Sequence record: OP380601.1
DNA length: 64,000 nt
Strand: one strand, 5' to 3'
Positions 3,307 through 6,142 of this stretch are shown piece after piece. Both the position numbers and the translations under genes were made by a program. The notes beneath the pieces are model-generated. The model saw only the letters and a program-made list of their open reading frames with translations, had not been told where the DNA came from and searched no databases. Each line of letters starts with the position of its first letter. Within the stretch, counting starts at the first letter, position 1.

Positions 3307-3555
3307 TTAACTGTATTGATAACCGGAATTTGAACGTTTCTTTTCGTAATCGTCATCAACAAAAACGTCATGGTCGCCATGCAGAATGTCATGTTTCAAT
3401 TTGCGATCTCGTTGACGAGACAATACATTATATCGGTCTTTAACACCACTATCTGGACTTTTATTGTAATAATCTCCCAAGTCGCGGGTCACATCAATAC
3501 TATCGTACAATTCGTGGAGATGTTTTTCATTCTTACGGCGAACAGTTTTACCCAT
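3307..3555 (-). CDS. hypothetical protein
   Basis: 82-aa charged ORF with SD AGG. Confidence 0.55.
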   Translation of the reverse strand: MGKTVRRKNEKHLHELYDSIDVTRDLGDYYNKSPDSGVKDRYNVLSRQRDRKLKHDILHGDHDVFVDDDYEKKRSNSGYQYS

Positions 3556-3566
3556 ACCATTTTCCT

Positions 3567-3889
3567 TTATAGGCTTTTTATATACGTGATAACTCGTTTT
3601 AATATATCATCCGAATTTATTATTTCAATATCATCAAATGAATATTTTATTTTCTTAATTATAGTCTCTTTCTTCCATCCGATTTTTAATGCATCATTTA
3701 TGAAAGAATACCAATCTATAATATAACCTGAATTATACAGGGTTTCTATCATTACGTCTAACGGAACTCCATTAGTTTCATATTGATAGAACACGTTACA
3801 CAACACAGGAACACCATTGTTAGTATAACCATTTATGAAAATATTATTTTTACTTTTACGTCCTAACGGCTTGCGTTTAGCGGCGACAT
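3567..3889 (-). CDS. hypothetical protein, apparently frameshifted near its 5' end
   Basis: Open frame extends upstream of 3806 to about 3905 without ATG; SD GAGG plus ATG at 3889 is one base out of frame; YETNGVPLDV resembles the AlaRS YDTYGFPLDL helix. Confidence 0.5.
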
Positions 3890-3914
3890 ATACAACCTCA
3901 CAATTTTAGTTTAA

Positions 3915-4218
3915 CGGGATACAAATTAATGTGTCGATTTCTAGAGTCCCATACTCTTATTAGAAATCCAAAAATGATCTGGTCGCACCATCACCAGACT
4001 TAATAGCATTGGCTACCCGAGCCCACACATGTAAACCTCAAACACCCCAATGGATTACGCTTACAAGAAGGTCTTGCTCGTTACTTTACGCTTAGGCCCT
4101 GAGAAAGGGAATCTAAGCCATGTCTAATGTTTCCACTAGATACAGTCACTCTTTTACAAATACCGGTGGGCTAATTAAAGCGTCGATTCCCATAGACCGG
4201 ACTATTGACGGGAATCCA
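3915..4218 (-). ncRNA. candidate structured ncRNA B, immediately 3' of tRNA-Asp
   Basis: No ORF; hairpins at 3936-3968, 3978-3998, 4007-4052, 4090-4118, 4123-4140 and 4185-4216. Confidence 0.5.
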
Positions 4219-4221
4219 AAT

Positions 4222-4298
4222 TGGCGAGGATGACGGGACTCGAACCCGCGACCACCAACGTGACAGGCTGGTATTCTAACCAACTGAACTACATCCTC
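4222..4298 (-). tRNA. tRNA-Asp(GTC)
   Basis: GAGGATG acceptor, CTGTCAC loop, GGTTCGAGTCC, encoded CCA. Confidence 0.95.
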
Positions 4299-4303
4299 AT
4301 TTT

Positions 4304-4391
4304 TGGAGGAGAAGGAGAGATTCGAACTCTCGGAACCTTTCGGTTCACTCCCTTAGCAGGGGAGCAACTTAAACCACTCATTCACTTCTCC
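4304..4391 (-). tRNA. tRNA-Ser(GCT)
   Basis: CTGCTAA loop, long variable arm, TTCGAAT, CCA. Confidence 0.95.
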
Positions 4392-4396
4392 GAAAT

Positions 4397-4472
4397 TGGT
4401 GCCGAATGTCCGACTCGAACGGACCACCCCAGCGTTACAAAGGCTGTGCTCTACCAGATGAGCTAATTCGGC
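4397..4472 (-). tRNA. tRNA-Thr(TGT)
   Basis: TTTGTAA loop, TTCGAGT, CCA. Confidence 0.9.
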
Positions 4473-4484
4473 AGGAGGAATATA

Positions 4485-4745
4485 ATCAGGATCCGTAGAC
4501 TGTGATTACATCCTTGGTTGATACGCTATCACTAAGAGGAAGGGAAATCAACCATATTTTGTCCATCTGTTCGTAGTTTGGTTAAGGACAGTAACCTCTA
4601 GTTTCACCCTGCTAGTCAAGGGGTAGTTTCCATATCGTCTTTATACTACCAATCCCGCCTATAAATTACAAGCACTTTATAGGATATCCAGATTCTCTAT
4701 GGCTGGCTTCTTCCGGGGATATACGCCGTTATCCCGTTCTTGTGC
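4485..4745 (-). ncRNA. candidate structured ncRNA C, between tRNA-Pro and tRNA-Thr
   Basis: Seven back-to-back hairpins: 4488-4514, 4515-4554, 4560-4590, 4598-4615, 4622-4650, 4658-4683 and 4714-4736. Confidence 0.5.
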
Positions 4746-4828: not shown

Positions 4829-4831
4829 ATA

Positions 4832-4902
4832 ATCTATTGAGTGGACTCGAACCACCAAAGTTCCGCAAACACCATCGCGGCTGCGTGTTGCCTACAATAG
4901 AT
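4832..4902 (-). ncRNA. degenerate tRNA-like element
   Basis: 8-bp acceptor-like stem ATCTATTG/CAATAGAT and T-arm GTGG-TTCGAGT-CCAC; aberrant D and anticodon arms; no CCA. Confidence 0.55.
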
Positions 4903-5319: not shown

Positions 5320-5394
5320 TGGCAGGCCCATGAGGACTTGAACCCCAGACGCACGGATTTGGAATCCGGCATGTTACCACTACACCATAGACCT
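5320..5394 (-). tRNA. tRNA-Trp(CCA)
   Basis: TTCCAAA loop, TTCAAGT, CCA. Confidence 0.95.
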
Positions 5395-5818: not shown

Positions 5819-5936
5819 TTTTGTGTAACGGGACTCGAACCCGCACCATCAGGCGACTAAGGCCCGGTATTTACATACTTTTCAGTAATGGATGGAGTCG
5901 ATCCCATCATGTTCTAACCATTAAACTATACACAAA
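5819..5936 (-). ncRNA. tRNA-like RNA with the anticodon arm replaced by a ~65-nt multi-hairpin insert
   Basis: Acceptor TTTGTGT/ACACAAA, canonical D-arm TAGTTTAATGGTTAGAAC, T-arm GCGGG-TTCGAGT-CCCGT; no anticodon loop; no CCA. Confidence 0.65.
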
Positions 5937-6066: not shown

Positions 6067-6142
6067 AGGTTGCGAGTGGCTGATTCGAACAGCCGACCTA
6101 CAGGTAATGAGCCTGTCGAGATGACCACTTCTCCAACTCGCA
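6067..6142 (-). tRNA. tRNA-Met(CAT), probable initiator type
   Basis: TGCGAGT/ACTCGCA acceptor, CTCATTA loop; 3' end encodes ACCT rather than ACCA. Confidence 0.85.

Follow-up and report, generated by a model that had tools for sequence, protein, structure and literature searches.

The window analyzed here is a stretch of 64,000 nucleotides of Aeromonas phage avDM6 (OP380601, 100% identity), a T4-like phage classified in the Straboviridae, Emmerichvirinae, genus Ishigurovirus. ARAGORN identified 17 tRNA genes in this window, all of them on the minus strand, which also holds all of the ORFs that flank the tRNA array. The main array is closed by tRNA-Asp (GUC), and the region studied comprises the ~300 nt from this gene to the leader of the first downstream ORF. 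An encoded CCA was found in 15 of the 16 avDM6 tRNAs examined, and in all 15 cases it is followed by an A/U-rich junction; the CCA encoded by tRNA-Asp is followed directly by AUUU. One of the two tRNA-Met genes (6068-6142, minus strand) is the sole tRNA of the array that lacks both the encoded CCA and the A/U-rich junction. The tRNA-Trp gene of avDM6 lies at 5320-5394, away from the region studied, with an unrelated spacer upstream. Two other minus-strand segments of the array are unusual. ARAGORN called a tRNA with a four-base anticodon (ggtg) at 4831-4902, adjoining tRNA-Pro, and a 116-nt segment at 5820-5935 matched the Rfam tRNA model with 44 bits and received no ARAGORN call, which suggests a tRNA scaffold carrying a large insert. 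The features of the region between tRNA-Asp and the downstream ORF are listed in Table 1.

Table 1. Features between tRNA-Asp and the first ORF downstream of the avDM6 tRNA array; positions refer to the 64-kb window.
Feature	Position	Strand	Description
tRNA-Asp (GUC)	4222-4298	-	ARAGORN; Rfam tRNA model, 69 bits; closes the main array
Module 1	4123-4217	-	5' hairpin, conserved linker, second hairpin
Hairpin type a (module 1)	4182-4217	-	outer stem, inner AUAG/CUAU stem, UCCGGU loop, then GAC
Conserved single-stranded linker (module 1)	4141-4181	-	invariant CCCACCGG
Small hairpin with GAAA loop (module 1)	4123-4140	-	rearrangement junction here
Core RNA X	3976-4119	-	144 nt; covariance model match 3970-4122, 164 bits
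P3 tip hexamer of X	4047-4052	-	pairs with 4007-4012; kissing loop or pseudoknot
P4 loop hexamer of X	4007-4012	-	partner of 4047-4052
P5 loop of X	3984-3992	-	7 of 9 nucleotides invariant in all lineages; contains UGGU
Module 3, hairpin type b	3933-3969	-	followed by GAC; paralogue of a, homologue of c
Leader of downstream ORF	3863-3932	-	variable stretch, then near-invariant block

A sequence-only reading of this region had proposed a single multi-hairpin RNA of ~300 nt, beginning 3 nt after the CCA of tRNA-Asp. Every stem that it listed was recovered at its place on the minus strand. The first of them, the GATTCCC/GGGAATC hairpin (4216-4184), begins 5 nt and not 3 nt after the CCA. The nested GCTTAG..CCC/GGG..CTAAGC elements, which start at 4119, form helix P1 of the central segment that we refer to as core RNA X, and TCTGGT/ACCAGA (3999-3977) forms its helix P5. 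The last listed stem, GATTTCTA/TAGAAATC, spans 3968-3936. However, these stems do not belong to one RNA. As judged by comparison of phage genomes, the region is made up of three independently assorting units, namely module 1, X and module 3, which are split or rearranged in other phages. Thus, for the central 144 nt the proposal of a functional RNA of unknown class is upheld, being supported by covariation and by the lack of any Rfam match, but it does not extend to the whole 300 nt. Similarly, GAC does follow both the first and the last stem, as had been pointed out for the motif AATCGAC, but it marks two paralogous hairpins rather than the ends of one RNA.

Folding energy, which had been suggested as a check, failed to set the region apart from shuffled sequence: z was -0.95 for the 307 nt as a whole, and -1.17 and -0.65 for the 5' part of the region and the core X of avDM6, respectively. 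Because these values are unremarkable, the case for a functional RNA was made by comparison.

The hairpins that flank X were found to share a design, in which a U run and a G are followed by a stem of the type GAUU...AAUC and then by GAC. No hairpins of this design other than a and b occur in the 64-kb window. Hairpin b is part of the leader of the first downstream ORF. In the CC2-type phages it has a counterpart, type c, and b or c always precedes the first ORF that follows the array. The outer stem of type c is wholly different from that of b while the loop motif and the GAC tail are kept; when the two types are aligned, all of the outer-stem positions differ and pairing is nevertheless retained. 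The hairpin changes in phage 65.2 and in contig L025 retain pairing only through G-U, and phage 65.2 carries types c and b in tandem. For hairpin a, one compensatory change (C-G to U-A) and one U-G wobble were observed among seven phages. Hairpin b folds with z = -3.0, and hairpin a alone with z = -1.5. Hairpins a, b and c are taken to be one paralogous family that is separate from X.

Module 1 follows tRNA-Asp in avDM6 and 65, and tRNA-Thr in CC2-type phages. Its linker is near-invariant between avDM6/65 and five CC2-type phages. For the small hairpin at the 3' end of the module, the 5' half alone is common to the CC2-type phages; in place of the hairpin with the GAAA loop, these have a different one whose loop is 6 nt long. 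Module 1 was not detected by BLAST in ZPAH1 and Aswh_1.

Several regulatory roles were considered for these elements. A terminator scan of positions 3500-4500 returned 0 terminator-like sites, and hairpins a and b were rejected as intrinsic terminators, as they are followed by GAC and not by a U run. A promoter reading of the hairpins was set aside because promoter matches were at background level only, and a likeness to a T4 middle promoter, noted by eye in the linker of module 1, was imperfect and was also dropped. Most likely, hairpins a and b would form the protected 5' ends of processed RNA segments, i.e., of the segment that bears X and of the mRNA for the next ORF. This reading is based on their positions after A/U junctions, on the compensatory turnover between b and c, and on the variants in which pairing is kept by G-U alone.

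Downstream of hairpin b, the first ORF after the array is closely preceded by a near-invariant block of ~58 nt (3840-3900, minus strand). The block contains GAGG, an ATG (3889-3887) and a frame of 8 codons that ends in TAG (3865-3863). Only 2 substitutions separate the block between genera, compared with about 55-60% identity at coding third positions there. For the ORF at 3806..3567, the coding-type pattern of substitutions extends upstream into this block, in another frame, and no conserved ATG, GTG or TTG was found in the extension. The GenBank starts of the downstream ORF also vary between phages (61 versus 78 aa). The block may represent an upstream ORF coupled to the next one, the site of a frameshift or an RNA operator. 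Locus searches anchored on the proteins of two downstream ORFs returned phage 65 only.

The distribution of the region was determined by BLAST against 50,697 phage records. The stretch was found in 20 of these records, which all belong to Aeromonas phages of the 65/CC2 group (Emmerichvirinae). Block analysis of nine fetched loci showed that the ~145-nt X is present in all nine. A search with the version of X from 44RR2.8t retrieved 43 more records, from T4-like Aeromonas phages of the genera Biquartavirus and Tulanevirus; two of the 43 are labelled Stenotrophomonas phage IME13. X is thus carried by 63 phage records, at one copy per genome. Partial duplicates were seen in CC2 (L003:1765-1846) and Assk (L007:1757-1811). 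They consist of the P1 hairpin and the next A-rich strand only and lie ~130 nt upstream of the full X.

Among the Emmerichvirinae, copies of X are 83-95% identical, compared with 49-62% at the third codon positions of neighboring genes; pairwise alignment of X to the other Emmerichvirinae gave 88-96%. In comparisons with CC2-type phages and ZPAH1, X is 88-95% identical, while four neighboring ORFs are 54-80% identical overall and 36-62% identical at third codon positions. By this measure, the conservation of X is at the level of a tRNA. The edges of the conserved segment are sharp and its flanks are unalignable: on the 5' side X is preceded by module 1 in avDM6 and 65 and directly by tRNA-Thr in B614, and what precedes it in CC2-type phages and ZPAH1 is unrelated sequence.

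Part of this identity may be recent. The tRNA-Thr genes of AS-zj, AS-szw and Assk are 100% identical to that of avDM6 (4397-4472), while those of CC2 and P19 are 68% identical to it. Variants of X cut across phage taxonomy and genus boundaries, and cassettes of the tRNA array seem to have been exchanged between co-infecting phages, to judge from these patterns. Therefore, part of the high identity of X may reflect recent exchange and not selection, and for this reason the deeper homologues mattered. A covariance model built from the nine sequences (R1), as the sequence-only reading had recommended, was run without filters on tRNA arrays. It yielded one full-length match each in B614 and 44RR2.8t.2 (Biquartavirus) and in phiAS4 (Tulanevirus), with scores of 78-89 bits and E values of about 1e-18 to 1e-21, and the compensatory changes described below came to light in these alignments. 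The distant copies are 53-55% identical to the avDM6 copy. Model R2 gave no match in Aeh1, phiAS5, KVP40, RB43 or T4, while its positive controls were found.

Further searches did not extend this range. Beyond the phage lineages already known, motif scans of IMG/VR and JGI metagenomes recovered just contig L025 and UViG L039; the extra matches from 17-mer and gapped-pattern scans were attributed to chance. Two pond metagenomes carry a DNA copy similar to that of phage 65 and add no new variation. Two wastewater metatranscriptomes share words with the stretch, and the contigs concerned cover tRNA genes only: they are tRNA-Asp, tRNA-Thr and tRNA-Pro look-alikes from other organisms, and they stop short of X. 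A scan of 185,579 species genomes with the motif of the P5 hairpin revealed no bacterial copy of X. It gave six matches, none of them in Aeromonas and all of them to that hairpin alone. Within avDM6, no second copy of X and no likeness to other inter-tRNA spacers was found.

One copy appears to be degenerate. In Aes508, the match (L029:594-728) is weak and apparently damaged at its 3' end, with BLAST coverage of 68% of the query and a covariance model score of 34 bits. The block of tRNA-Trp, tRNA-Ile and tRNA-Ser that normally comes next is missing, and the annotation places a minus-strand CDS over this copy. X would therefore be dispensable in at least one isolate, and Aes508 may serve as a natural knockout.

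The predicted structure of X is a row of helices held together by a loop-loop contact. P1 is a hairpin interrupted by an internal loop; P2 and P3 together make up a long arm that bears an AAGA bulge and ends in a tetraloop; P4 and P5 are hairpins, the latter with a 9-nt loop. The elements CATTGG (4052-4047) and CCAATG (4012-4007), which the sequence-only reading had listed as a stem, correspond to the contact of the tip loop of P3 with the loop of P4. Each of the 12 sequences forms all 6 pairs of this contact, and 2 of the pairs are doubly changed between lineages in an exactly compensatory manner. In the 12-sequence alignment, which was fitted to the model, double changes were observed in 24 of the 43 base pairs of X and in 7 of its 8 predicted helices; the remaining helix, of two pairs (CC/GG), is invariant. 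Paired cells accounted for 99.2% of the total, versus 83.8% after shuffling, and none of 500 shuffles reached 99.2%. When the partners were slid by 1-3 columns as a control, 22-46% of cells paired. The deep covariation compares essentially two lineage groups, and many of the double changes therefore trace to one branch. RNAalifold, run without the structure of the model, recovered the same fold, and the 44RR2.8t copy folds unaided into it with z = -3.1. A kink-turn reading of the AAGA bulge was dropped because the opposite strand lacks an A.

The strand to which this structure belongs could also be determined. G-U pairs, which the opposite strand would turn into mismatches, occupy 80 of the 507 paired cells, and the sense strand of X folds with -42.6 kcal/mol versus -31.9 for the antisense strand, which indicates that the structure belongs to the transcript with the sense of the tRNAs. 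Of the unpaired columns, 36 of 65 are invariant, compared with 30 of 86 paired ones. Altogether, we regard X with high confidence as a selected RNA structure.

X did not correspond to any RNA that we searched for. Rfam 15 (4,227 families) gave no relevant match for the avDM6 or the 44RR2.8t copy, at gathering thresholds or in a permissive search with short queries (322-nt query, E up to 10). ARAGORN found no tRNA or tmRNA in 3915-4221, and no match to the tRNA clan of Rfam was obtained within the region at E up to 10. A tRNA-like nature of X was rejected, since these programs revealed no cloverleaf, T-arm or acceptor stem. Matches to YrlA in the array lie over tRNA genes only, and neither a T-box nor an RNase P core is present in X. 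The statement that the region is neither tmRNA nor RNase P was thus borne out by the ARAGORN tmRNA search and by Rfam. Finally, a literature search for X turned up no earlier description.

The genomic context of X points to a possible origin. The tRNA-Trp gene begins 6 nt after X in CC2, P19, ZPAH1 and Aswh_1. The same spacing, in the order tRNA-Thr, X, tRNA-Trp, was found in every Biquartavirus or Tulanevirus locus examined except that of Aes508. Because it also occurs in part of the Emmerichvirinae, this order is taken to be the ancestral arrangement. In B614, X fills the entire gap between tRNA-Thr and tRNA-Trp, with 8 A/U-rich bases between the CCA and X and 6 bases between X and tRNA-Trp. 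In avDM6, the A/U-rich junction after X resembles those that follow the CCA ends of the tRNAs.

During tRNA maturation, polycistronic precursors are cut by RNase E-type cleavage after the CCA and by RNase P at the 5' end of the next tRNA. As X lies between tRNAs and is bounded by A/U junctions, ordinary tRNA maturation would be expected to release an RNA of ~150 nt. Given the ancestral slot (tRNA-Thr, X, 6 nt, tRNA-Trp), the best reading of X is a stable RNA derived from the poly-tRNA transcript. According to this explanation, a non-coding RNA gene of ~145 nt with a compact fold would be co-transcribed with the tRNAs of the array. Its 5' end would be released by a cut within the A/U-rich junction that follows the upstream CCA, and its 3' end by the RNase P cut at the 5' end of tRNA-Trp, its ancestral follower, and the freed RNA would persist and act in trans. 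The invariant unpaired nucleotides, above all those of the P5 loop, would then provide a contact surface for another RNA or for a protein. With moderate confidence, we favor the view that X is a processed, trans-acting stable RNA of the tRNA array of T4-like Aeromonas phages.

Alternatively, X might be a cis-acting, structured 5' leader of tRNA-Trp with no life after processing, which folds beside the tRNA and guides or times its cleavage by RNase P, or protects the precursor. In three phage lineages, which show the ancestral order, 6 nt lie between the end of X and tRNA-Trp. This agrees with such a role, as does the coincidence in Aes508 of damage to X with loss of tRNA-Trp. However, X is intact (164-172 bits) with no tRNA after it in avDM6, 65, 65.2 and contig L025, and in AS-zj it is followed by a hairpin instead of a tRNA. 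A purely cis-acting element that had been uncoupled in this way should decay, and the persistence of X without an adjacent tRNA-Trp argues for a function of its own and not for a pure leader role. We therefore consider the leader hypothesis unlikely.

A more specific role for X as a trans-acting RNA was suggested by the P5 loop. Over six nucleotides, the loop is complementary to the 3' end of three phage tRNAs, namely tRNA-Thr, tRNA-Arg and tRNA-Leu(UAA), the first of which is the ancestral upstream neighbor of X. This 3' ending is common to several tRNAs, so the complementarity is weak evidence, and a link between the loop and these three tRNAs is speculation from sequence. There are precedents for such recognition: the NCCA end of tRNA is read through pairing with a UGGN or GGU motif by the T-box discriminator and by the L15 loop of RNase P RNA. 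X might represent a new class of RNA that binds tRNA 3' ends, or that binds a host factor reading them, by displaying its invariant UGGU loop on a rigid kissing-loop scaffold, a proposal that we consider quite improbable as it stands. If it were true, X could shield or sense the phage tRNAs or act as a decoy for a tRNA-directed host defense nuclease, and T4 RNA C and D might be its functional analogues.

The sequence-only reading had also raised the possibility of self-cleavage, and X might accordingly be a small RNA of a new class, self-cleaving or otherwise catalytic, by which the poly-tRNA transcript is processed. Its compact fold, covarying tertiary contact and many invariant unpaired nucleotides are ribozyme-like, and it is located at processing junctions. 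These junctions are already explained by host RNase P and RNase E, however, no known ribozyme family was matched by the 322-nt query at E up to 10, and no conserved signature of a cleavage site was identified. A catalytic function is thus very unlikely in our judgment.

Conservation might also act at the level of DNA, with the RNA fold being incidental to recombination or homing cassettes, or to protein-binding DNA sites, that would move together with tRNA genes between co-infecting phages. The modules have been shuffled, partly duplicated (in CC2 and Assk) and exchanged across genera, and the array of P19 contains a homing endonuclease gene. This explanation does not predict the compensatory changes in 24 pairs, the strand-specific G-U pairs or the covarying loop-loop contact, and X is flanked by no inverted terminal repeats or target duplications. 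We regard it as highly improbable.

Many of the records have a CDS for a hypothetical protein in the place of X, and none of the records listed annotates it as an RNA. In 65.2, a CDS of 39 aa overlaps X (L002:1697-1816), and hypothetical protein CDSs on or touching X were also noted in 44RR2.8t.2, Riv-10, avDM1/2/5 and others. The sense strand of avDM6 contains no ORF of at least 25 aa across X. That the segment encodes a small protein, as the GenBank CDS in 65.2 would have it, is hardly credible, since frames that are stop-free over the whole element in some copies are shifted by single-base indels among close relatives or interrupted by in-frame stops (three copies), and no frame is open in all copies of X. 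In the lack of a conserved frame, the CDS calls over X, such as that of 39 aa in 65.2, are probably spurious, and recognition of X corrects the annotation of these phage genomes.

With its structure, conservation, strand, independence of context and absence of coding capacity thus established, X is best seen as a previously unannotated RNA family that is supported by covariation, of a kind (a stable RNA in a phage tRNA array) already known from T4. It also offers a tractable model, since the covariation-backed structure shows which helices and loops to mutate and natural variants of X exist with or without the adjoining tRNA-Trp.

Several bacterial RNAs provide a framework for this interpretation. 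In E. coli, RtT RNA from tyrT and the 3' external spacer of glyW-cysT-leuZ are by-products of tRNA operons that persist and act in trans. These host RNAs are short and weakly structured or repetitive, whereas X is phage-encoded and tightly structured. A further comparison is with tRNA-like and tRNA-binding RNAs, such as the bacterial Y RNA-like YrlA, the T-box and RNase P RNA: X sits among tRNAs, and its invariant P5 loop carries UGGU.

The closest comparison is with T4, in which rnaD and rnaC lie directly after the last tRNA gene. RNA C (species 1) and RNA D (species 2) of T4 are 139 and 119 nt in length, near the size of X, and are encoded on the tRNA strand; they originate from the tRNA region and their roles are unknown (PMC3014915, PMC9697503). 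X occupies the same niche, in or at the end of the tRNA cluster and on the tRNA strand, and its biogenesis would be the same as that of RNA C and D. However, the folds differ. T4 RNA C closes into a cloverleaf-like structure and has a T-arm; X, by contrast, consists of four consecutive stem-loops and a kissing contact, and no part of it is tRNA-like. Model R1 gave no match to the T4 locus at E up to 10, and model R2 gave none to the whole T4 record at E up to 1. In a BLAST search with T4 rnaD-rnaC (806 records), the matches listed and the 10 named genus-groups, beyond which there were 14 further ones, were enterobacterial and included no Aeromonas phage. In view of the different folds and of the failure to cross-match by model or BLAST, homology of X to rnaC or rnaD was rejected, and by analogy of location X is best read as a positional analogue of RNA C and D. 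X would be a second, unrelated and better constrained RNA in the niche of T4 RNA C and D, present in three lineages of Aeromonas phages, which suggests that the tRNA arrays of T4-type phages have repeatedly come to accommodate an RNA gene other than a tRNA.
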